DNA of 64,000 bases from Setoptus koraiensis (lineage: Eukaryota; Animalia; Arthropoda), in contig CM106585.1 of the NCBI GenBank assembly GCA_048013815.1, forward strand, positions 9,548,001-9,612,000, written 5' to 3'. The notes below the pieces were generated by a model. The model searched no databases and was not told where the DNA came from. It saw only the letters and a program-made list of their open reading frames with translations. This document shows positions 2,952 through 44,816 of this stretch, in pieces. Positions within the stretch are counted from its first letter, which is position 1. Each line of letters opens with the position of its first letter. The translations under genes were made by a program, and so were the position numbers.

Positions 2952-3772
2952 ATGGCATTTTCTTTGACAAATGGATCAAAACAACAACCACTATCGCGAT
3001 CTCAATCGTTACCCATTTTTTCGTCAACTCCAACACACCCCTCATCATCTGTGTCCTTGCCGTCTGATGCTTGCACCACTAATGGCTTCATTACGGAACC
3101 TACCCCCCCAACAGTCAAATTATCACCATCACCAACATCATCCATAGAAGTTGCCCGATCTATTATAGAATCTGAGTTTAAACGAATGGGCTTCGAAGAG
3201 GATGGAAGGTGGCGAATCACAGACATTAATAGAGATTTTGAACTTTGTAATACTTATCCACGCTTTATAATACTGCCTTCAAGTGTCAAAGACGAAGACC
3301 TGGAATCGGTGGCGAAATTCCGCTACCTTAGAAGGATACCAAACGTTGTGTGGCGTCATAGAAAAAATGGATGTTTTATAGTTAGAAGTAGCCAGCCCAC
3401 AGTTGGCTGGTGGCTAGGCGGCTGGCGCAACGAACAAGATGAAAGATTGCTGCAAGCTTTCGTCAACAACACCACATCCTGTGATCAAACAAAAAGAAAG
3501 CCTTGTTTTAATCCTTTAGATAATTCAACAAATAACCTGGCATCATCAGATACACCGGCCGACACATCTAGCTCCTCCAAATTACTGATTATTGACGCGA
3601 GAAGTTACACAGCCGCAGTTGCCAATCGTGCCAAAGGAGGTGGATGCGAATGCTCTGAGTACTATCAAAAATGTGAAGTGCAATTCATGAACCTCGCTAA
3701 TATCCATAGCATTAGAAAAAGTTTCCATTCTATAAGGAGTGTTTGTGAAACATATAGTGAACAATCTAATAA
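2952..3772 (+). CDS. MTMR3/4: Myotubularin-related protein MTMR3/4, first recognisable coding exon
   Basis: EFKRMGF..WRITDINRDFELCNTYP..IPNVVWRH..GCFIVRSSQP..GWRNEQDE, LLIIDARSYTAAVANRAKGGGCEC.EYY..CEVQFMNLANIHSIRKSF. Ends AA|GTAAGT (phase 2). The ATG at 2952 could be the start or follow an acceptor (CCTTCCAAG). Confidence 0.92.
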
Positions 3773-4018: not shown

Positions 4019-4132
4019 GTAAGTTTCATTCATTGAAATAACCCGCTTTTATTCAATAAAATTATAATCGTTTCTTTTTGAGTTGCTAGTATACCTGATC
4101 TAATAAAACTATCTTCCTTTCTTTTTTCTCAG

Positions 4133-4939: not shown

Positions 4940-7399
4940 CGACTCGCGTGCACCTTGCAATAGGCCATGAGCTATCAGATCTTAACTTTCTACTGACACC
5001 TCCATCTTTACCCTTGCCTGTAATCTACCACACAATGTACTATGTGTAAGCTCAATTACCCAAACTAATTTTCTATCTAGGATTCCCTGTTCAACTACAT
5101 AATCGCTACAGGATGACTTTAATCATGCTTGAAAATCTATCTAATCGTAATTCCTTTCTTTCGCTTCTCAAAATCAGATTAATGTAGGTGATGGAATGAA
5201 GCAGAACGGGTTCAAGCAAAATCAGGATACCGAACATCGCGAGACGATGGCTATCACCATGATTGATTCAGCTGGTCTAAAATCAAATTAGAAATTTCTT
5301 GTGTGCAGGGAAGATATGAATGATAAACATGAAATAATGTAAATAGACGACTTAAGGACCATTTATAAACAATATAGAATTACCATAGGTTTGGTGAAGT
5401 CGGAGATTCCTCAGTGTTATTGTTACTGTATTTATTGTACCTTGATTTTCGTTAGATTCTGCTCGCAGCCGATCCTTTTCTGGCCTGTTAGCACAAAGAA
5501 ATTCGAAGGTATTTAGACAATTTCTTCATTGACTGAATCACAAAAGTATTTATTTGACCATCTAACTCTTGTCAAGTAACAAAAGTGCCCATCACAGTAA
5601 AACTTATCAATTCGCGACTACGCTGTAATAAATGTTTATTTCGGTGAGTGCTAGATTTGGATTTCTTTCAATTATTCAATAAAGTATAGCATGTGTGATC
5701 TACCGTCCAATATGTTATTACTAGATTTATAAAAATGGTGTCTATAGTTGTACATCCGACTCATAGCCTCTCTTTGAATGTGCAGAAGATGGGAGCGTTC
5801 TTATAAATATTCAACGAAAGTTGTGAGTTAGCATCGCAGCAAATGACAAGAATATTAATTTACTTGATTGGCAGGTCGCCGTAATTTGATCCTTCCTTTG
5901 AAAGTGGATCCATCGTTCAGTGTCACAAAGATCTTGACCAACAGTTGACTAATTCCCTGTATTGGACAAGTAAGCCATTACAGAAAAGTATCCTCTTTCC
6001 TATTCTCTCGGATCAATGAAGGATGGATAGTTTTGTTTCGAAAGTTATGTCATGGACCGCTGGGATGAATTTTTTCGCTCTACAAATGACAGATTATAAT
6101 GTGAGAACTGGCGAGGTTTTCATGGCAATCTCATGGTCGAGTGACTTCATGCTCGGTTCCAAAGTTGGGCATCTAATCTCAAGTCACTATTATCACTGAG
6201 AGCCTCATTAAATTTTCGTCAAAGCAGTGACCACTCTAGTATTTTGTTTGTATGGATATTGTCATGAAGACTATCAGTGTATGATATGGTCATTGACAAA
6301 ACTTAGTCACAGCAACGTTGGTAAGAGTCTATCTAGAAGATCAGTGATTCAAGGGGCCCCATTAGCTACAATATCAGAACTGAGCGCTGAGGCCTAGAAA
6401 GAGACCAGGCATACAGTGTAGATGAATCAGTTGTAGCATTGTGAGGGCGAGGCTGTACCCAGGGATCCCAAAATGAGTTCTGAGGTGGCGCTTCATATTT
6501 TCTTCACTGCAACGCGAGTGAATATAACCAACGAGCCAGAAAGGATTGCGCCGCTAGCGCCAAGAGGCATCTAATTAAATAAAAGTCATGAGAATGGCGC
6601 CGAAAAAGCACATTTTATACATTTTTTTTTCTTTCTTTGAAAGGATTTCTTTCAAAGCGAATATTTATCTCGGTCGGCTTAGCATGATCAAATTTTTGAG
6701 GCGGACGCGTTTATTTTGAGACAACTTTATTTCAAGTTACAACGAGATAATCTATTGTTGAGCAGGTCAGAGCGGCAGCGGCAGCAGTACCGAAATGGGT
6801 CCGACAGGAATGGTCGTTTCCCCCGCGCGCCCATGAAGTTGGGCTCGGAACTCTTTCGATCGAGTCATTGTTCTTGTTCCTGTTTTTCCCCCCTCCATTC
6901 TTTTTTCAATGTTTATTGCACAATTGAATACAGTTGTACAGTTGTACAGTTGTATAGTGGGGCACATTGTGAGCGTTTTATTCTGGTGGTGGCGTGCACG
7001 AGCAAGCCGTGTATACTGATGTATACTGATGGACAAAGTTTACAATCAAGAGAGCTGTCGCTTGGTTCAGCCGCAAGGCGGCTTTTTATATTGCTGCACC
7101 GGATAGGCTGGTTGCATTATGACGACGATTGAAGGTCGCTGATGTGCTTGCGACACGCCTGCGCTAACGGGGGCCCCAGCAGCGGCAGCAGCAGCAGTAG
7201 CAGCTGTGCACTGTTGCTGGCTGTGAGTTGGTCGCATGGAGTCGCTGGCATTTCCACGTTGCGATAGAGTTGCCAACTACAGCAATAATGTGTCTTTAAG
7301 CAGGGCCAGCAAAACTACTGCAGCCAGAGCTCATTTGTATGTGAGCGTTAGTTACGTGATATACACAAATGTTGGCTGGCGCACGTGTTTATATTGCAC

Positions 7400-7401
<2 letters not shown>

Positions 7402-7435
<34 letters not shown>
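7402..7435. repeat. (GT)17 microsatellite
   Basis: Direct reading. Confidence 0.95.
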
Positions 7436-7436
<1 letters not shown>

Positions 7437-8040
7437 GGTGAGGGGGTCGCATTGCGAGCGTATATACGGTAATGGTAGTGTTAGCAGCGCCGCTAGTGCA
7501 CTGGTGGATATTGTACATATAGTTATGACAGTGTACTGTAGATAGTTGAGTGTCGCCGTGGAATAATTCGACCGGCGGCGCGAGTGAGCCGCCGCGCTTA
7601 CAACTGCCGCTAGTGGAGCTGCTCGCAACAGTCTGACTCAGACAGTCTGAGCGAACTACTCGGTAGTTACTACTGGCAGGGGCAGGCAATGTTGCGCACT
7701 CACACAATTGTCGGTCGTCTCACTGCAGCCAGCACACACTGATACCCCTATAGAGTGTTGCGCGCCTCGTTGGTTGCATGTCTCACAATGTCGGATCGGT
7801 TGCTTATCTCACAATGTTGCTTGTTGTTGTAAGCGGCTAACAGTAGTGGCTAGCTGATTAGATTCGACTGGCGGCGATTGTGAGTTGCACGCATTCGCAC
7901 TGCGCCGCCGCTGTCTCTCCCCGCGTGCGCACCCCCTGCCCCCCCCCAGCCGTGCCTCACTCATGTAGACGCAGTACACGCAGTGTAGTAGCCCCACTGG
8001 AGTAGCAGCAGTGATAGTTCAATGATTTAGTCGATGCGAA

Positions 8041-8075
8041 TCAGTTCGCAAAGTTAGCTCGCACCGGTCACACAC
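8041..8075 (+). promoter_or_regulatory. Candidate cpo core promoter: Inr-like TCAGTT (8041-8046) and Ohler motif-1-like CGGTCACAC (8065-8073)
   Basis: Motif match to Drosophila consensus, at the boundary where plus-strand composition switches from GT-rich to CA-rich. Confidence 0.3.
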
Positions 8076-8817
8076 ACACACACACACACACTCACTCACA
8101 CAATTCGTTCATTCACTGTCGCGCACCAGCACCAACGCACACACACGCACGCACACTCACTGGGCGAATCTCAACGTGCACCAGTATCGAATATCAGCAC
8201 CAGAATACACACACTCACACATGTAATGTTATCGTCGTCATCATTATCATTATTATTATTATCATTATTATTATTGCCAGCGTAATCATTATTAACTTGC
8301 ATTATTAAATTGCATTATTAAATTGCAGCAAGCGAACTGCGAACACAAACCGATATTACGTTATATGCAAACAGCGCAACATTGTTGAGCGAACCAAAGA
8401 GCGAAACAATTCTTTTTGAGCACCAAAACTCGAGTCGGACAAGTTGTTTTGGCGAGCCAGCGCGCACCCTCGAGCACACCCAGCGGACGCAGCCAGCCAA
8501 TTGATTTTTGTACAAAATTGTCGCAATTGCCAACCGCAAGCACAGCCGAAACTGCAACCGCAACAACAACCGCAACACCTAACAACAACCCGCAACAACA
8601 CCCAACAACGACACACAACAACCAACAACGACACACAACAACGCGCAACAGCACGCAACAACAGCCTCAAGTGGGCCCACTCCAATCGCAAGCTCGCCAG
8701 CAAGTCGCGGAACAGGCCAGTCGCAAGAGGCTCCCAGCAGCCCAAAGCAGCCGCAAGCAGCACCCAGCAGAGCCAACAAGAAGCTCGAGAAGCGGCCCCA
8801 CAAATCACAGCAAGCAA

Positions 8818-11900: not shown

Positions 11901-12191
11901 GCAGCGGCCCGCCAGACCGACACGCATGCAATCGAGAACAGATTAATGGCGCACAACAAATATAGTAATGAGATCAGTAGATAATGGCCGGCTCGCCACA
12001 TCACGCCGGCCGACACTATTAACTCATCGCTCGTCTCTCGAACGCCCTCGGACCACTTGTCAGACAAGTGGACAAAAGCGGGAAAAACGCGCAACCAACT
12101 AACCAACAACACCAACTAACCAGCGTTTTTCTCTCTCTCTCTCTCTCCCTGTCTACCCCTCACGCCCGTGATTGTTTATTGCCGCCACCAG

Positions 12192-12269
12192 GTACGCACT
12201 TTATTTGTCAGCGGTCTGCCCATGGACGCAAAACCGCGCGAACTCTACCTACTGTTCAGAGCCTACAAG
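12192..12269 (+). CDS. cpo: couch potato RRM exon [26 protein letters not shown]
   Basis: Near-identity to the Cpo/RBPMS RRM start. CCAG acceptor, AAG|GTAAGC donor, ACTAAC at 12098 and 12115, (CT)n tract 12126-12160. Confidence 0.97.
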
Positions 12270-30978: not shown

Positions 30979-33279
30979 AGCAACAACGGCAACAACAGCG
31001 CCCGTTCCTTGTGGCCAACACAAAATGATGAATGATGCTGATCGCCTGATTGCATCATTGTTTGTAGTGGCCAGTCGTGTATCTAGTTACACAATCAGCG
31101 TTGGCGAGCGCCGCTGTGAGAGCCGCTGTGCGAGCCGCAAATATCTGGCCGGGCCCCCACTGACACCGCGGCTGACATGCACACCGCACCGTAGTCACAC
31201 ATCGGCCACGTTGGCTCGTTATCCCGCTGGCCGCCACTTTTTATTTGGCCCGTTACTCGCTGTCACTCGCTTGCCAGTCGGTGGGCCGCTGCTCGCCGCT
31301 GGCCGCGTTCGGCTTGCGGCCCGTTATTTGAGGTTATTTCGGGCCGGTCGACTGGTCAGCCCGAACAACACGTGGCGCATCATCATCGACAAACACGACG
31401 CCCGAATGGGGGCCCCACACTGAGCCCAATGCAACGGAGCCCAATGCGACGGAGCCCAATGCGACGGAGCCCAGTGAGGCCCGATGAGGCGGCGCCCTGG
31501 GAAATGTTGTCGGCTGGCCGGCAGTGGTGTTAATTGTGGACAAGTCGCCCATTAGCGCCCCATTAGACAGGGCCAGTCACAAACTACACAACAGTTAGCG
31601 CCCCCGAAGGGGCCGCCAAGCCGGTGCCGGGCGTCCTTTGGCGAGCGGTTAGGCGGCCCGCCAGTGCGAAGCTCGCCAAACACACACCCGCCAGTTGGGG
31701 CCCAGCGAACAATAATGAACTGACGGGACTCGGTTGGCTCAATTCGGGCCGGCGCCGCGCCGCGCCGCACAAGCGACTGAGGCACCGCACAGCTCTGGCG
31801 CCTTTATCGCCACGGTGCACTCTGTGTTGTTGTGACCTGTTTTGCCTGGCCAAAACCGCGCGCGGGCGCAAATCCAATCTGGCGGCCCGGCCGGTCACGG
31901 CACAACGGGCTGAGTATGGGCACGCGGAGCCACCTATTCGGAACATCATAGTGCCTATTGGGAGGTGGGCCATTTCATGCTAATGCACACAATGCTCTCG
32001 ACCGATCGAGTCATGTCGCCCGATGGGATTTGTCAGAGTGTTGTGGCCGGTCCCGAGCGGTCCCGAGTGGTCGGCCACAGCCGGCCCAGACTTGGCCAGA
32101 GCCGGGTGCCCGGCACGGCTGGGGCCCGTGGCACGAATTATGGGAATTATCATGGGATCGGATTCGATTAGGCGCACGCATGACACGCTGGCGAGCAACA
32201 CGATTCGGTGTTATGTGTCAATATCGGACAAGATCGGAAAACGCCCACACTGAATGCTTGTGTCATGATGGATGTTTCCGGCTTTGATTGCGCATTGGCC
32301 GGCCATTGGTCATCCGTCGGGCGATATCAATCATTTCGCTGTCCGCTGCGCGCCGCCCGTCGCTCGTGTCCGCTGCCCGCGTCGGCTGTCCGCGTCGGCT
32401 GTCCGCATCGGCTGGGCCCGCACAATAATTGGCGCGGCGCCACACACCCAAGCGCCCCCTTGCTGGCGTGCTGTGCGGCCCGCGCAAGCGGATTGCCGCA
32501 CACTACGGGATCGATCTATCGGGCGAGTCTCGAGCGTCGAGTCTCTAGCCTCGAAGGGCCCCCACGACAGCGCGAGCCCGACAGTGCGGGACGGACAGTG
32601 ACTTTGGCAACAATTGGCCAAATTGCAAACAACGGTATCGCTTACTCGCTGGCGGCGGCTATCGAGGGCGCACCAGACGCGCCCCATTAAAAAGGCCGAT
32701 TTTGATTTGGCTGCCGGTCGCTTGTTGGGCCAATCGCAAACAATGTTGCCGATTGTGCGAGTCATCGCGCGCCCCCCTCCATCATGCCCGCTAATCCGGT
32801 TTGGGGCCCGCTCGCCTCGTTTATCTCATAATGTTTATCATGGCAACAATAATCCTCTGTGAGAGGTTAAGTGTTCCGTTGGCGGCGGCCATCCGTTATC
32901 TGGGCGACGAGCACATATCTCGCTCGTGCTGCCAAAAGAACAGACTTTCGGATGGGGAAAATGGGCGCGGATAAAACCTGCGCTCGACCATCCGCCGCAA
33001 TATATTATGTAGTGATATTGCCCGGGCGCGGGCCGGAATTGGCGAACGGGCGCCCAGAATAGATTATGTTATAGAACAGTGTTGTTTAGGACGAATGTGA
33101 ATGCAATTTCAGGCCGCGCCAACCCGCGGGCCGGCGGGCCGGCCAGCCAGCGCGCCTCGCCAGGCGCAACAACCAAAGCGACAACCGGCCGGCCCAAAGC
33201 AACCACCGGGCGCCCAAAACAACAAACTCACAAACTCACAACCGCGACTAAACAAACAGCTCATTTTGATTCACTCCCG

Positions 33280-33325
33280 CTAACCATGTTTATTCTCGCT
33301 TTGTTTATCTACTGCCCCTCGCCAC
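33280..33325 (+). promoter_or_regulatory. Putative distant branch point (CTAAC, A at 33283) plus pyrimidine tract for cpo exon 33522
   Basis: Consensus branch point followed by a pyrimidine-rich stretch. No AG between 33260 and 33519. Confidence 0.65.
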
Positions 33326-33521
33326 CGGCCCCTGGTTGCGCCATCAACGTTGCCATCAAACTGCGCCGCTGTTTGGATCAAATCAAATCAATTTTCAATA
33401 ACTGCGCCCAACAACTCGCAACCGCTCAATACCGGCCCCGCTCAATGGCGCCACGAACAACGTGCGCGTATTTGCATACGCGCCGGGCACACAAACAACG
33501 CATCATGTGCGCACAAAAAAG

Positions 33522-33575
33522 GGATACGAGGGCTCGCTCCTGAAAGTGACCAGCAAAAACGGCAAGACGGCATCG
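33522..33575 (+). CDS. cpo: couch potato RRM exon GYEGSLLKVTSKNGKTAS (54 nt)
   Basis: Matches the arthropod Cpo RRM segment. AAG acceptor at 33521 and TCG|GTGAGT donor at 33576, phase 0/0. Confidence 0.95.
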
Positions 33576-36500
33576 GTGAGTATATAGCGACAGTGACAAT
33601 GTCGCCATCGGCGCGCCACCGCATCGATACTGCGGCGGATAATCCCAAAATTGGCTTCGAATTGGCTTTTGCTCTCACTGTCACAGCTCTCACTGTCACA
33701 GCTCTCACAGCGCCGGCCCGACGCTGTGAGGCCAGCCAAACTGGTGGCCGTGTCGTGTGGTATTTGTGTCACGACGACAGCGGCGCACACCGGACGGTAA
33801 GCCAATTACATGCAGTTGAACCAAGGCCAATTTGTGTTGCCTTGGTGCCGGCGCATCTTGGCATCTCGGCGACGCCAGAGTGTGGTTGCGTCACCGGCAT
33901 CCAAGCGGCGTTGCGTCACCGGCGTCGGAGCGGCGTTGCGTCATCGACGGCTCGCTTGCCGCGCAAACTGACGCTCGTCATGCCGTCATAATTGGCGTCA
34001 TGGCGGTTGTGTCATGTTGTTTATCTTTGTTCAATTTTGCTCGATTTCGCTCAATTCTGTTCAACTTTGTTCAATTTCGCTCAATTCTGTTCAACCTTGT
34101 TCAACTCTGTCCGACTGTGTTGAATTCTGCTCAGCTGTGCTCAATTTGCGCACACAATCACAATCGGCCATCAGCTGCTGATCACCTGTCACCCGTTTGG
34201 CCGGGCTGATGCGCGGTCGCTCGGTTAACAAGTTGCAAGCGTGGCTGTCATTTGGCGGGCAAAACTGGCACACTTGTCAGTTTGCCAGTTTGACAGTTTG
34301 ACAAGCACCACATGCCGCGTTACATTTCTGTGCTGTGCTGTGCCGTGCTCCGTTGCGTTGCGTAATCTTTGTTGTGTGTCTTGGCAATATTGCCAAGGGT
34401 TATTACAAGCACACACACACACACAGTATTAGAATCTAATAGTATTACAATAGCGCACACAAACATAAACAATCATCTATCAAGTTAACACAGCGGCGAC
34501 GGCGGCGGCAGCGCCAGTGCCAGCGATGATGTAATAGTAGTATTAGTGTGTTCATGCGATAATGATAATCAGTAGCCCGCCTGGTAAGATGATTACCAAA
34601 ACAATGATAACACGCCGCTGTTACGCCATAGCCACTTCCGTTGGGCGCCCGTGCGGGCCTCAGCGGCAGCTTATCAGTGTGACGAGCTGGCTGCGCTGTT
34701 GCCATTTGATCCGCGGCTATCTTATCGGGCTAATTTGCATACGCACGCCACACAGTGTTGGCATGTACTGTTGGTTGTGCTGTTGGCTGGCCGTGCACTT
34801 GTTTCGCGAGGGGGCGCTATTCAGCCGGCGCCGGCGGCGCCGCCGCTGCTGCTGCTGCATTGTTTGTTGGTGGCAACGCAAACAAACAGCACGAGTTGGC
34901 GGCACGCAAACCGGAAGTTGTCGGTGTGTCGACCATTGTGTGCCAACAATATTGTTGTATGTGCACGCATATTGTGAGACTGCCCGCCGAGGCTGGCCGG
35001 CTGGCTGCTTTGGGGGCCAATTTCGCCGCTCCAATAGCCAGCCGCAACAACGCCCCATAGGTTACGTAATAACCTATGGGGCCTAATCAGCGTAATAACG
35101 ACAATAACTGCGATAATTGTAACTAGTCCGCGATTATGCAACTTGCAGCGGCGTCCATTCGCGCGACGTTCATTGTGCTCGGCTCTGTAGAACGGACTCT
35201 GCGTCTAGCGCCGCGCCATAGAGGGCGCCATTTGCGTCGGGTGACCTTTGGCCTAATTCGATTATAACGCCACCAATTACCGCAATTTCAATCCATACTC
35301 TCTCTGCCATGTCGCCCCGCTCGCAAGCAAACGGCGCGCTTGCTGTTTCCAATTAGCAGCAAATGCGAGCCCGCCAGTCATCAGGGGGCGCTATCACTCG
35401 TGCAATAATGATGACCAGTGTTACGTGCTCGCCGGTGAGCTTTCGCGTCTCGGCGGGCCTCGCATCAATTGGAGCGGCCGTTCGAGAGGGGCGCTCAATC
35501 TCGATTTGTTTTGGCTCTCTTCAGCGGTTGTTTCAGCAGCTCGCCACTAGCCGGCCGTTGTCTATTTGTTGATGATGTCGAGTTGTTGTTGTTGTTGCTG
35601 CTGTTGTTGTTGTCCATTTGACGTCGTTGCTGTCGCGCTGTTATCGCCGCCGCTGGGCGCCACAATTCGCGCTCTCTCCCGTTGAGAGGAAGCGCAAACG
35701 AGCCTATGCCTATGCGAAACGGCGCCACCTAACTGGCGGCGCCCGTAATTACGAATGCACCCCACATATCCGACCAATGCTGGCCAATGCCCACTAAATA
35801 GTGAATATCGCGCGCGGCCCGCTCACTCGGCCGGCGCCGCTCCGGTCAGCTGTGGGGGCGGCTTAATTACATTTATTGCGCCGGTATCTCGGCAGCGCCA
35901 TCCCATGATCACATGATATCACATGCTAGTTAGTGATAATATTTCCATTGAATGAATCATGATAATTACGCTCGCTCGCTCGCTCGCTTGCAGCAAAAAC
36001 TGCTCATGTGATGAGTATGCCGGCCAGGCCGTATGGTCAAACTGTTATGGCCAGACCCTGGCGGCCAGACATGGCAATTTCGCCACACTCTGGCGGCCAG
36101 ACCCTGGCGGCCAGCCAACTTGTAACAACAGCCCGGCACACGGGCCAAAATGAAGCTGTTCAGCATTACGCAACATTATGGCGGCGGACATTAGGCCAGC
36201 GCCAGTCATTAATATGCCGCTGATACTGACCATAATATTAGTGCTGTTCGCTTCAGTAGCTGCGGTTGTTGGGTCTGTTGTTCGAGGGCCCGACGCGGCC
36301 CCCAACAACAGACAACAGGCACACATAATGCAAACACTGGCTCACGCTCATTACGTAATACGTGATACGTAACGCGTGCTACGTAATGCGCACTACGTAC
36401 CACGGGACAGGTTGGCGGCCCGTACTCGCGTGACCAACAATATTAACAGGTGGCAGGCAGCTTGTTCGATCTGCTTAAAATCAATTTCGGCCCCATTGCT

Positions 36501-38012
36501 CATAGCTCACAGTCATGCGAATTAGTGAGCGTGCCAACAATAAATGTAACCAGCTGAGTAGCCAGCTTGTGGGGCCCCACAAAACTGCCGCCTGGGCTGG
36601 CCGTGAGCCGTGCTTGTGGTGCCCATCTACATATGTTTATATTCAAGTGTTTATGTATCGAGATCGAATATATATGTATACAAGTATGAATATAAAGTCG
36701 CTATTTATATTTAAAAAATTTGTATACAAGGCTCGCGGTGGAATGAACGCTGCGGATAAATGCCAATTATTGAGCCCATGTGTTTATCTCATTAGGCTGT
36801 TGCGTGTCGCGCGTCGTCACTGGCTGTTACAGTGCCGCTCGGGCCGACCGGGGGCCCCCGAGCGGCCGATTTGTGCAGCACTGTAACAGCCAGTTGGCCA
36901 GGGCGACAGAGTGAGCACCGGGGTAGTATTTCATTATAGAGGGCAGTGCTATGGTGTGGGCCGACAACGGCCACAGCAAGACAGCGAGAATAATTTGAAA
37001 AGCAAAGTGGGGCCCCTTTGTTGTTGGCTGCGGCGCGAGCGGCAGAGCCTCTTTCAGTGGGCCAAAGTCAGTCAAAGGTTGTTGAGCGACACACTGAAAG
37101 AGGTTCGCTGTTGTTGTTGTTGTTGTTGTTGTTTGTCGTTGTTGTTTGTTGCTGAAAAAAGCTGGCTGCTGAAAAATACAAAAAACAACACGGCGACAAT
37201 AGCGCCCGACGTGGCGGTCACGTGAGCAACTGCCAGTGCGGTCAGTTGTCGCAAAACAGAAATACAACACTCTTTGTGGGTGTCCATTAAGATTATTGCC
37301 TCCTTATCATAATGGGGGCCAATGGGGCCGACGGGGCCGGCGGGGCCGACGAAAGTCGACGAAAGCCCACGAGAGCCCACGAAAGCCCACGAAAGCCGAC
37401 GGGGCCGACGGGGGCCAGCACACAATGGGCCCAATTTTGGGCTGCTATTCAATTCGAGCGACCCGTCGGCGAGACAACCGACAAGTGTTTGCTTATATAA
37501 ACTGCAGTTTGATTCAATCTGTCACACAATTTGGCCGAGCAGCGCCGAGCACAAACCAGACACACCGACTATATTTATATCTGCACAAACAAGCAACTTT
37601 TGTTTCCCTGCGTCTATATTTACATTGGCATCGTTGCTATTGGTGGCGCGATCTGGCCGGTTGGCTCGGGGCCCCACATTTGGGGCCCACTTGCAGCCGC
37701 GTTGCCGCTTTGCCACACGTCCCAACCAACCAAATATCGGCACAATGTGCTAGCCCAATGCCTGAGCAAGGCAAGCCAATTGCCTGTTGGCTCGCTCATA
37801 GCCGCCAAGCCGAGCTGGCCAACACACAAAAATACGCCGAATGGGCCCAATTTTCGTCGGGCCACAATTATTATCCGTCAGCGACATAACGCATCAGTGG
37901 GCATTTGTTTGCGCCTAGCGTGATTGGCTGCTCGCTGGCCAGACTCGGCCCCACAACGCGTGCCGAGGGCCCAGAGGGCAGCACGAGCGGTCTTAAATTG
38001 AATATTGGCACC

Positions 38013-38098
38013 TCTGACTAACGCTGACGAACGCTGACGAACCCCGACGAACCCCGACTAACCCTGACTAACTTTCACTGACTTTCCGCCCCCTCAAT
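38013..38098 (+). promoter_or_regulatory. 10-bp tandem array (CYGACKAACN x6) with three ACTAAC motifs, then a pyrimidine tract; putative branch-point region for cpo exon 38172
   Basis: ACTAAC at 38017, 38057 and 38067. No AG between 37988 and 38169. Confidence 0.6.
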
Positions 38099-38171
38099 CG
38101 CGAAAACGATGCGAAAAATGGCGAAAAATGGCGAAAAATGGCGAAAACGATGCAAATTCGTGCGTGGGCAG

Positions 38172-38427
38172 CCCGTCGGATTTGTGACATTCACGACGCG
38201 CGCCGGAGCCGAGGCCGCCAAACAAGATCTGCAGGGCGTGAGATTTGATCCTGATTTACCGCAAACAATCAGATTAGAATTTGCCAAATCTAACACAAAA
38301 GTCAGCAAGCCCAAGCAACAATCGTCGCCGCCATTGCACACCCAGGCTAACAATCAAAATGGCAATCACCAAGGATCGCACCATCAAACTGGCCTCACAC
38401 AAAGCGCCGTCCACCCTCTCACCGGTT
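38172..38427 (+). CDS. cpo: couch potato exon [48 protein letters not shown]...HPLTG
   Basis: RNP1 and RRM C-terminus characteristic of Cpo. CAG acceptor at 38171 and T|GTGAGT donor at 38428 (phase 1). Confidence 0.97.
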
Positions 38428-38595
38428 GTGAGTATCTCAGCAGTAATTATGTCCCCCAACAGACAACTCATTTCTTCCATCCATTTCTCGCACTTTGCCC
38501 GCTTGGCGAAACCATCTAACCATTTGCACACACGTTAATAAACACCCCACAACCCGATTGGTGTCGACATTTGGTTGGCGACATCCCGACGTGTA

Positions 38596-38655
38596 CCCGG
38601 CCAAAAACCCGGCCAAAAACCCGGCCAAAAACCCGACGAAAAACCCGACGAAAAA
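38596..38655. repeat. Minisatellite, 12-bp CCCG(GC/AC)(C/G)AAAAA x5, in cpo intron 4
   Basis: Direct reading. Confidence 0.9.
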
Positions 38656-38921
38656 TCCGATGCGCACCCGAACGACCAACCCTAATTAACTCGGCACAAA
38701 TCGCCACCAACCGAACAAACAAACATCGCGGCCCGACCGAAAAATGGCTAATTGACCGAAAATCGAAATTGCCAACAACGGAAAAAATGTGGCCGCTTGA
38801 AAACCGCGAAAACGAACCGCGAACTTTATTATGAAAACTTTATTATGAAAACGACGGCAAACCCAAAAACTGAACAAACCCAAAAAACCGAACGAACCCG
38901 ACCGAATGACGCGCAAAACAG

Positions 38922-39079
38922 TGGAATTAAACGCCGCGCTCCTGTCGGGCGACGGCTGGAGTCACCCGCATCACGCACTATCCTACCAAGACCACGTTAA
39001 CTCTGTGACGTCGCCCATCCACTCGGCCGCCGCCCTCGTGCACCCGGGCCACCATCCGGGCCTGCACGGCCAGTTACCC
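38922..39079 (+). CDS. cpo: couch potato exon (L)ELNAALLSGDGWSHPHHALSY...AALVHPGHHPGLHGQLP
   Basis: ACAG acceptor in phase 1 and CCC|GTAAGT donor. W.HP..Y and LVHP..H motifs resemble the Cpo C-terminal region. Confidence 0.88.
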
Positions 39080-39590
39080 GTAAGTCTCACATTGTAATTA
39101 ATGTAAAGTGTTGCTCACCACTCATTGCCGGCTCGGGCCGCCCGCTCAACGCGACGACATTGCGCGGCACATTTATACACTGGCTCATTTATACATTGGC
39201 TCATGAGGGGGAGGGGGGAGCAGTTGCCATGGCGAGCGCATCCGCGCGACATGGCAACTGTGCGACGGGCGCCGACAGCGGCCCGCTTGCATAAGCCGCC
39301 AAGTCACCATTAGCCCGACCGTAAGCCGCTAGTTAGGTAATGCGGCGGCGACATGCAGCGGCCGCTAATGATCTTTGACAGCGCGCTTGGCGCTGCCGGC
39401 TGCCACGGGCCCCAACGTGCTCGTGTCGCCCGGCGAGCCGGCTGAGACAGCGCGTGCACGCCGGCCAAGATCCGGCTGACGCTGGCGCCGCTGATTGTGT
39501 CTGACAACTGGCGAAGTGGGGGCCCCCGACTGGCGCTTTGTTCGCCGCTGTGTGACGCTGTCGCGGAAAATCGCTGCCAGCGCCACTGCC

Positions 39591-42600: not shown

Positions 42601-44780
42601 CGGTATGTGTTTGTGCACACGAACGGGGAACGTCCAACGGGACAATTTTAATTTATTGCCTGTCGCATCGCGCTGCAAGCTCGCCACTGGCACGAGTTGT
42701 GTCGCAGCGGCAGTTATTATTTTAAACTTGCCAAACTCTGGCCAAACGCTCGCCAAACGCTCGCCAAACTTGGCCCCGCACGCGGCCGGAAGTAGATGGC
42801 GCTGCGGTGAATGTTGCACAAGGCGCGCAAGGACGCCAAATGTGTAAGCGACAATGTGTAAACAATCTCTCTCGCTGATCGAGCACATCGCTGGCTGGCT
42901 GGCTGGCTGGCCCGTTTGTTTGTATATTGCTATATTCATATATATGCGGCTGTAATATCATTATATATATTTACATTAGTTGTGGCGTCACTCGGCCCCC
43001 AACACGCCACACACAATGCGCCACTGGGCACGGCGACGGTCTTGACGGGCGCCCCAAATTGAGTGCAATCATCATATTTATGTTTGTTGTGTTGTGTATA
43101 TTTGGATTTACATTTTACACGCCGCAACATGCCGCACCGATGTGCATCATTTTCCACTAGGCGCATTTTGTTTTCTTTCAAAATTTGTGCCACACGGCAG
43201 CACAAATTTTGATTTGTGCGCGAACGACCCTATGCGCTCACTGTCGGCACTGTTATATTGCCCTATGTTACATAGGCTATGTACGGTACATAGGGTCGCT
43301 CGGCAACGCTAGTCGGCCTGGCGAGCTACCGGCGCGCTCGCCGTCGCCGGGCCGCCACTTGAATTGGGTGGCCCGGCGAGCCAGCCAGCGCTGGCCAGCA
43401 ACAACAACCGCGCAACCACAGTTGATAATTTATTCCAACAAAACGCTGACATCGAGCGGCGCACGGATAGCGCACGACGGATTGTTATTTCGGCTCGGCG
43501 TTTCTTTGGGCCGCTGCCAGCTCGATAATGGCACACACACGCACACTATATAAATAGCTCTGGCGAGATCCATCAATCACACAGACACGCCAGACTGGGG
43601 CCGGCCGTCAGACGCTCAGAAATGAATAGGCCGCCCGGCGCCAGACAGCTCACCGGCCGAATCGGTGCGCTTTTTCGGGCCGGCCCGACGGGCCGCTTGC
43701 TGGCGTCGGCCACGTCCGCGGTGGCCGCTTGTTTGCCCGCCAGACTCGGCCAGATTCTGCCAGACTCGGCCAGATTCTGCCAGATCCGGCCCGATCCGGC
43801 CCGATTCGGCCCGATCCGCCATCTCATGCGATGCCCATTATCTAATCAATAATAATATTCTAAGCTACAATTGGGCCGACTTAACTCTTTGCTCTCCGCG
43901 AGCCCGGCCCCATTGTGATTACCGCTATTGTGCCGCTAGGCCGGCCATTTCGGCACGAGATTAGCCTGTCACCGTCGTCGGCGATGCGCCTATATTATGC
44001 ATATTATGTGTATTTTGTGTGTATCATGTATATTATATCTGTTACGTATATACATACATACATTTTGCGCTACTTTGTTCACTCGTCGTGGCGTCCAAAT
44101 CGCGCATCCAGCTAGACGATAATCAATGATGTTGCGTCATAGTTGCAAACAGCAGCGACGCCGGCATTAGCGGTATTAATACTGTCGGGCCGGGGGCTTA
44201 CGCGACAACAGCGCCGCTCGGACTAAGTAGCGGATTATGCTTGCGCTGGCAATCATAATGATAAATAAAATCATTGGGATTTGTTTTTGATCAGCCAGCC
44301 AGCCAGTGAGCCAGTGAGCCAGTGAATGAGTTGCAAACAATGCTGCCACGACCCCTTTCTATCTTTATCAAGCCAACAGGCTAAGCTGGCCCCAACCCAA
44401 AAATCAATCAGCTCGCTGCGAGAGCCACCAACAAAACTGTTGGCAAGTTGGCTGGCCAGGCCGGCCAACTTGACAAGCATGACAACTTTATTATTTCTAG
44501 CCCATTTAATTTTCCATTTGGCCCCATTGAGCGCTGTGACGCGCCACTAGCTCGCCGGCCTAATGGCTAGGCCGGCCTACTTAATGGGCCCAGACTAATG
44601 GCGCACGGGCATATATCACAGTATCGCGGTATCTCAGTACCAATACTATCACAATAGTACTATCGCTGGCATCACAATAACAGTTATAAGCAGCAAAGTA
44701 CCATAGCACCAACTATTATATAATTAACTATTATATAACTAACTAATGATTGTCTCTTCTGTTTGTCTTTCCCCATTCAG

Positions 44781-44816
44781 ATATCCCGGTTTTTCCCATT
44801 TGAGAATGCCTATTAG
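44781..44816 (+). CDS. cpo: Probable cpo terminal coding exon ISRFFPFENAY*
   Basis: Strong 3' splice site: ACTAACTAAT (44738-44747), pyrimidine tract, TTCAG at 44780, 72-nt AG-free zone, phase 0. The peptide itself is not recognised. Confidence 0.6.
   Translation: MSRFFPFENAY

Follow-up and report, generated by a model that had tools for sequence, protein, structure and literature searches.

The stretch of 64,000 nucleotides (nt) of Setoptus koraiensis contig CM106585.1 analysed here in full (the window, with positions counted from its first letter) carries on its + strand part of a couch potato gene (cpo), of the RBPMS family, the exons of which, A to E, were placed by homology. At three consecutive acceptors of this gene, those preceding exons B, C and D (acceptor AGs at 33520-21, 38170-71 and 38920-21), the intron ends in a long stretch from which the dinucleotide AG is absent, and the candidate branch-point motif CTAAC is found 100-402 nt from the acceptor, a distance that extends to approximately 635 nt in related species. 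The gene is identified by its conserved cpo/RBPMS RRM sequence, including GYEGSLLKVTSK and PVGFVTF, and PF00076 is recorded on the relatives. The nearest named cpo proteins belong to a mite (Brevipalpus obovatus) and to spiders; exon C in full is 72% identical to the B. obovatus RNA-binding protein isoform X4 with a query coverage of 100%, and its conserved two-thirds share 91% identity with couch potato of Trichonephila. Alignment of the protein to cpo orthologues proceeds without gaps across KTAS/PVGF and HPLTG/LELNAALL, and therefore the acceptors at 33521, 38171 and 38921 are fixed to the nucleotide. The latter junction agrees with P0163 and with the exon structure of two outgroup loci (L002 and L001). 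P0163 (L005) runs uninterrupted through HPLAG/LELSAALL and then into GTAAGT, and would represent either an RNA spliced only in part or the loss of the intron between exons C and D from a genome, the junction being confirmed in both cases. The acceptor position before GYEGS is likewise common to outgroup arthropods, whose contig open reading frames (ORFs) read ...Q/GYEGS.

The AG-free runs measure 260, 182 and 457 nt (zones 1, 2 and 3, respectively) and end exactly at the three acceptors, lengths that a preliminary description of this DNA had given and that are reproduced under its own counting convention; the sequence contexts it gave for the three acceptor AGs are likewise borne out. The runs of 457 and 260 nt rank first and second among approximately 6,100 AG-to-AG gaps on both strands of the window, in which background AG-free runs extend to at most 218 nt on the + strand and 199 nt on the - strand, and a length of at least 182 nt is reached by just eight of the approximately 6,100 other gaps. 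Base composition predicts 11.3, 12.5 and 28.1 occurrences of AG in zones 1, 2 and 3, with none observed in each, and mononucleotide shuffles gave a zone with zero AG in 0 of 20,000 cases. The GA dinucleotide is present in normal number in zone 2 (18) and zone 3 (32) and is low in zone 1 (3). The normal GA counts in zones 2 and 3 indicate that the deficit is specific to AG rather than a shortage of G, which occurs within the zones in CG, TG, GG and GA contexts and is absent only after A. AG density is back to normal immediately upstream of each zone, and by the exclusion-zone test of Gooding et al. (2006; PMC1431707) the second exclusion zones measure only 58, 4 and 17 nt and are thus much shorter than the first (260, 182 and 457 nt). 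All three cpo zones also display a feature of the class described by those authors, an AG-free stretch of at least 100-150 nt directly 5' of a bona fide acceptor. The acceptor at 33521 is an AAG, a weak context, with no rival AG for 260 nt upstream and with a GAG as the next AG downstream.

The sequence directly adjoining these acceptors is poor in the usual signals. The pyrimidine share between positions -25 and -4 is 0.41 at each of the three, compared to 0.91 at 4132, 0.86 at 44780 and 0.64 at 12191, which bears out the observation in the preliminary description that no pyrimidine tract adjoins them. The loose metazoan branch-point consensus YTNAY has no match over the final 213, 89 and 78 nt of the three respective introns and is located at -29 to -38 for conventional acceptors; absence near the acceptor is nonetheless a weak criterion alone, as branch sites can be degenerate. 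Toward the opposite end of the zones, CTAAC occurs 20 nt from the start of zone 1, 30-80 nt from that of zone 2 and 53 nt from that of zone 3, and the candidate branch sites of zone 2 lie 100-150 nt from the acceptor. The preliminary description had envisaged a branch-point consensus with a pyrimidine tract near the far end of every zone, an arrangement that is found in zones 1 and 2; in zone 3 the CTAAC is present as described, but the tract lies upstream of the motif.

The placement of CTAAC is highly selective within the window. The motif falls in the first 70 nt of three of the 32 longest AG-free runs on both strands, these being the three cpo zones, and in none of the 29 others. There are 37 copies of CTAAC on the + strand and 72 in the whole window; five of the 72 are followed by at least 70% pyrimidines over the next 40 nt, and all five are situated just upstream of homology-confirmed cpo acceptors. 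For four of these five, the first AG at least 8 nt further on is the acceptor itself (12191, 33521, 38171 and 44780, at distances of 72, 238, 110 and 38 nt, respectively), while the fifth, at 12099, leads to an AG at 12123 that would be bypassed from the neighbouring CTAAC at 12116. From the CTAAC at 38516, the first AG is the acceptor at 38921, 402 nt away, and there is no other CTAAC on either strand of the window with a first-AG distance greater than 105 nt. A rule that takes CTAAC with a pyrimidine tract and from there the first AG is enough to recover every one of the five cpo acceptors of the window, with zero false positives. The exon A acceptor, with a branch-to-AG distance of 72 nt, has an AG only 4 nt past its second CTAAC (12116) that would be bypassed, which fits the rule quoted by Gooding et al. 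(PMC1431707) for an AG closer than 12-15 nt to the branch point. The coordinates of these features are collected in Table 1.

Table 1. Exons of cpo and splicing-related features in the window
Feature	Position	Strand	Description
cpo exon A	12192..12269	+	26 residues; donor GTAAGC directly after
cpo exon B	33522..33575	+	54 nt, encodes GYEGSLLKVTSKNGKTAS; donor GTGAGT at 33576
cpo exon C	38172..38427	+	PVGFVTF...HPLTG, RNP1 and remaining RRM; phase 1 end; donor GTGAGT at 38428
cpo exon D	38922..39079	+	LELNAALLSGDGW...HGQLP; donor GTAAGT at 39080
cpo exon E (terminal coding)	44781..44816	+	ISRFFPFENAY and stop
3' intron end before exon A	12099..12191	+	CTAAC at 12099 and 12116, pyrimidine tract, acceptor AG 12190-91
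Zone 1	33260..33521	+	260 nt AG-free and acceptor AAG
Zone 1 CTAAC	33280-84	+	candidate branch A at 33283, 238 nt from acceptor
Zone 1 U-rich pyrimidine tract	~33288-33325	+	downstream of CTAAC
Zone 2	37988..38171	+	182 nt AG-free and acceptor CAG
Zone 2 10-nt repeat array	38014-38072	+	holds three CTAAC: 38018, 38058, 38068
Zone 2 pyrimidine tract	~38073-38098	+	followed by GCGAAAAATG minisatellite 38111-38147
Zone 3	38463..38921	+	457 nt AG-free and acceptor CAG; takes up nearly the whole 494-nt intron
Zone 3 pyrimidine tract	38467-38507	+	upstream of CTAAC
Zone 3 CTAAC	38516-20	+	402 nt from acceptor
Zone 3 weaker motifs CTAAT/TTAAC	-236, -232, -170	+	relative to acceptor
Zone 3 minisatellites	38595-38659, 38822-38852, 38858-38906	+	
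Conventional exon E acceptor	44739..44780	+	CTAACTAAT 34-38 nt upstream, adjoining pyrimidine tract, AG 44779-80

Exon C served as the query in protein searches, which together with contig look-ups and one metagenome scan gave the orthologous loci; the loci of relatives are contigs from public runs and metagenomes, some of the latter plant-associated. At least three related species bear AG-free zones of 98-670 nt at orthologous cpo acceptors. A 71-kb JGI metagenome contig (L013, with L012 from an ENA plant metagenome and L057 representing the same or a sister species) shares the gene structure of the window, including the intron between exons B and C, and has AG-free zones of 136, 98 and 377 nt ending exactly at the B, C and D acceptors, each with CTAAC near its 5' end. 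A second relative, L003, is devoid of the introns between A and B and between B and C, but displays 670 nt free of AG at acceptor D, with CTAAC and a pyrimidine tract at the start of the stretch, and a further zone of 544 nt at acceptor E (6825-7370 of its contig) that starts with CTAACTAA and a long tract. In L006 and L007, the zone at acceptor D measures 516 nt and its start is TACTAAC. The zones of the relatives hold no AG where 15-34 would be expected, with GA at its normal level, and the longest AG-free runs on the minus strand of the relatives' loci measure 79-141 nt (79 nt in L003). The comparison with orthologous introns that the preliminary description had called for thus recovers long AG-free zones at the acceptors of introns that cannot be aligned: no sequence similarity to the introns of the window was detectable in the orthologous introns, and it is therefore the absence of AG that is conserved, and not the sequence. 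The zone at acceptor E, conventional in the window at 72 nt (44709-44780) and 544 nt long in L003, indicates that spacer length changes quickly. Among outgroup arthropods, the zone at acceptor B (before GYEGS) is 8-73 nt long, mostly with U-rich tracts, and reaches 137 nt in L004, and that at acceptor D is 84 nt in L002 and, in L001, 2 nt by script and approximately 45 nt by direct reading of the sequence.

The relatives' contigs are compact, with neighbouring genes present as single ORFs. The cpo introns of the window measure 21 kb, 4.6 kb, 0.49 kb and 5.7 kb, the large ones being GC-rich (52-63%) with a minisatellite share of 14-16%, and the first three in L013 measure 194, 273 and 1161 nt. 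An intron between KTAS and PVGF interrupts the gene in the window (33576-38171) and in L013 (2728-3000) and is absent from L003, L006, L008 and the outgroups L001 and L002, a distribution that would reflect either a gain within the lineage or repeated loss.

Repetitive DNA contributes unevenly to the three zones. Both minisatellites named in the preliminary description are recovered by Tandem Repeats Finder, at 38111-38147 (10 nt x 3.7) and 38595-38659 (12 nt x 5.4). Measured against random intronic windows of equal size, tandem-repeat coverage is 60% in zone 2 (P = 0.012) and 32% in zone 3 (P = 0.06), and only 6% in zone 1, where the intronic mean is approximately 14%. Repeat expansion has therefore plausibly lengthened zones 2 and 3, as had been proposed, and in zone 2 it has plausibly multiplied the branch motif itself; that proposal does not extend to zone 1, which is not repetitive, and repeat expansion is thus not the whole story. 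Length variants between samples, seen in DNA contigs, comprise an insertion of 11 nt in zone 1 and, in the CTGACGAACC array of zone 2, one of 20 nt that equals two repeat units. Neither insertion contains an AG, and none of the few single-nucleotide polymorphisms in the zones creates one, a pattern that, with variants few in number, fits a free change in length under a ban on AG. In two of the runs (X2 and X3), contig depth over 36000-39150 climbs from approximately 2 to approximately 65 over 3 kb toward exons C and D, and depth is a poor measure here; these two DNA runs are small and equal in size, and probably represent a single data set entered twice.

The reading favoured here, with a probability of roughly three in four, is that cpo would be spliced by a U2-type mechanism with strong CUAAC branch sites, and that the AG-free stretches would be real AG-exclusion zones served by distant branch points and by selection of the first AG. 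The serial distant-branch architecture that the preliminary description had proposed for this gene is supported by the AG-specific absence, the placement of CTAAC, the short second zones, the lack of YTNAY and the relatives alike. Mechanistically, CUAAC and its neighbouring pyrimidine tract, which comes after the motif in the first two zones but before it in zone 3, would commit the 3' end of the intron early, as in AG-independent introns, and once the lariat had formed, the first AG more than approximately 8-12 nt past the branch would be used for exon ligation. The spacer would then be free in length and sequence provided that it held no AG; selection would purge AG from it, and slippage-type expansion of AG-free repeat units could lengthen it freely. 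Since RNP1 and the RRM core are encoded by exons B and C, a role for the layout in exon skipping is unlikely. The exons of the RRM core are presumably constitutive, which suggests that the layout represents the normal splicing mode of the lineage and not a regulation specific to cpo. The parallel to regulated vertebrate exons that was drawn in the preliminary description therefore probably fails, given that exons B and C form the RRM core and that the layout recurs across species.

Several observations weigh against this reading. The preliminary description accepted that it would be undermined if AG-free runs of such lengths were common elsewhere, and in the window they are not at 457 and 260 nt, but the 182-nt zone lies inside the background tail. 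The branch site of zone 3 is less clear than the others, as the tract precedes CTAAC and only 55% of the 40 nt after the motif are pyrimidines, and the weaker CTAAT and TTAAC motifs at -236, -232 and -170 are further candidate branch sites. Exon ligation over at least 400 nt would be at or above the longest human predictions, which are the AG-exclusion zones of 381 and 438 nt in PTB and nPTB (PMC1431707). Long zones are also not obligatory, for in the relative L008 the zone at acceptor D is just 41-42 nt, A/C-rich and without a tract. Folding of the sequence from the distal CTAAC to the acceptor, compared to dinucleotide shuffles, gave z = -1.16 for zone 3 and +0.07 for zone 1, with no excess of structure; the spacers fold no better than shuffled sequence, and a structural bridging of the type known in yeast is therefore not evident. 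Finally, the argument is built on DNA sequence and homology: a search for sequencing runs turned up none of RNA, and the three runs compared at the locus are DNA contigs without splice joints.

An alternative reading, considered unlikely, is that proximal and degenerate branch points operate at these acceptors without a tract, and that AG has been purged widely because the choice of 3' splice site in this lineage is loose, such that upstream AGs could pair with CTAAC-like motifs and compete. The acceptor-proximal sequence is indeed A/C-rich and tract-free in all relatives, even where the zone is as short as in L008, and zone 3 contains a TGAC approximately 15 nt from the acceptor along with several branch-like motifs distributed along its length. 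Proximal branching is difficult to reconcile, however, with the lack of any YTNAY within 78-213 nt of the acceptors, with the normal density of AG directly upstream of CTAAC, or with the performance of the CTAAC-plus-tract rule, which finds the acceptors without false positives. The explanation would moreover need the distal CTAAC and tract to be active branch sites, which is the distant-branch model again.

More doubtful still is the proposal that the A/C-rich spacers are platforms for an RNA-binding protein, for example one that binds CA- or C-rich elements, which would regulate inclusion of the exons, the lack of AG being secondary. In its favour, short motifs recur in zones 2 and 3, which are A/C-rich, and the verified distant-branch-point exons of vertebrates do have regulatory elements in the zone (PMC1431707). 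A binding platform would nevertheless be hard to square with orthologous spacers that have no motif or sequence conserved between them, with a G that is missing only after A and present as CG, TG, GG and GA, or with the position of exons B and C, the skipping of which would destroy the RRM domain. That local composition and AG-lacking minisatellites produced the AG-free stretches incidentally, unlinked to splicing, is disfavoured and very improbable: the introns are rich in tandem repeats (approximately 14-16% coverage), background AG-free runs reach approximately 200 nt on both strands and a run of 161 nt occurs in coding sequence, but composition is insufficient where 11-28 AGs are expected, none is seen and GA is normal in zones 2 and 3, the runs stop exactly at homology-defined acceptors, orthologous acceptors in at least three other species are alike with unrelated sequence, and just 6% of zone 1 is tandem repeat. 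The coding run in question, at 2952-3114, is the S/T/P-rich N-terminus of a myotubularin-related gene and not an intron end, and it follows that runs of approximately 160 nt can arise unlinked to any acceptor.

The architecture favoured for cpo, with distant branch points and AG-exclusion zones, has its closest counterpart in a class of vertebrate exons described by Gooding et al. (2006; PMC1431707), which includes alpha-tropomyosin exon 3, alpha-actinin, PTB exon 11 and nPTB, together with the scanning model (Smith et al. 1989, 1993, as cited in PMC1431707). As in the cpo zones, a long AG-free stretch reaches to the acceptor, the branch point (ggCTAAC in alpha-tropomyosin) and tract are located at its 5' end, AG occurs upstream at normal density, an AG less than approximately 12-15 nt from the branch is bypassed, and zone lengths are of the same order (PMC1431707). 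The vertebrate cases, however, form a small class of mostly alternative, PTB-regulated exons, whereas in the mite the layout is serial, spans three consecutive exons of an essential RRM and is tied to a near-invariant CTAAC, and in its relatives it recurs at orthologous acceptors with zones of up to 516-670 nt. Serial use at seemingly constitutive exons, orthologous recurrence with unrelated spacers and putative distances of at least 670 nt are thus what appears new relative to the vertebrate cases.

Other systems share single features with the mite gene. Budding yeast has a similarly strict UACUAAC-like branch site and uses the first accessible AG downstream (PMC3239191), but there, stable structure shortens long distances, whereas the mite spacers show no excess of structure over shuffled sequence and the distances are several-fold longer. 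The near-strict branch motif is also reminiscent of intron-poor eukaryotes (Irimia and Roy 2008; PMC2483917), and the contigs of the mite's relatives are compact; in that study the spacing of branch and 3' splice site is reported to converge on a constrained range, in contrast to mite cpo, where the distance from CTAAC to acceptor varies from 38 to 402 nt in one gene. In the REPA elements (bioRxiv 10.1101/363804; PMC6339879), purine-rich sequence parts the pyrimidine tract from the 3' AG, a separation also seen in the mite, although the mite spacers are A/C-rich, hundreds of nt in length and not conserved in sequence. No description of the present layout was found in the literature on mites and Eriophyoidea with respect to branch points, polypyrimidine tracts or splice sites, and the genome paper of Aculops lycopersici makes no mention of branch points, pyrimidine tracts or acceptors.

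A broader proposition, judged to have odds slightly better than even, is that the 3' splice site has become independent of the branch point and tract in a whole animal lineage. Constitutive exons would there be ligated routinely at whichever AG came first, 100-650 nt or more past a strict CUAAC, across unstructured, freely evolving spacers. If true, this would imply an unusually long-range search for AG at the second step, or altered U2AF, SF1 or second-step factors, in a metazoan. Choice of the 3' splice site by a search from the branch point has mostly been examined in yeast and in a small number of regulated exons of vertebrates, and how the second-step spliceosome reaches an AG hundreds of nt away is poorly understood; a lineage with routine use would provide a natural system in which spacers range from tens to hundreds of nt between close species. 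There is a practical consequence as well, in that gene predictors trained on tract-adjacent acceptors will misplace exons in these genomes. The case further exemplifies neutral repeat expansion filtered by the constraint of one dinucleotide.

On a gene-dense contig of one relative (L009), there is no AG-free run longer than 133 nt, which ties the very long zones to introns in genes such as cpo and not to the DNA in general. The same contig includes, at 6556-6651 on the - strand, a TACTAAC and pyrimidine tract that open a 94-nt AG-free run just past an ORF of 804 amino acids, which is probably the end of another such intron, in an unrelated gene. In L003, an AG-free run of 853 nt (7412-8266) directly follows the stop of the last cpo coding exon (LSRFFPFENAY*), with TACTAA overlapping the stop codon and pyrimidine-rich sequence thereafter; the window has no counterpart past 44816. 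This run may be an exclusion zone that belongs to an additional 3' exon or to an intron in the 3' untranslated region.

Beyond cpo, a Pfam search with ten long ORFs of the window returned only a CRAL-TRIO gene and the myotubularin-related gene. The former is an intronless CRAL-TRIO/SEC14-like ORF at 1310-2026, whose named matches are vertebrate proteins of only 34-35% identity. It has approximately 45 distinct relatives at 58-89% identity, found only in unannotated contigs of public runs, which suggests that the lineage is a frequent passenger in public data sets and essentially unannotated there.

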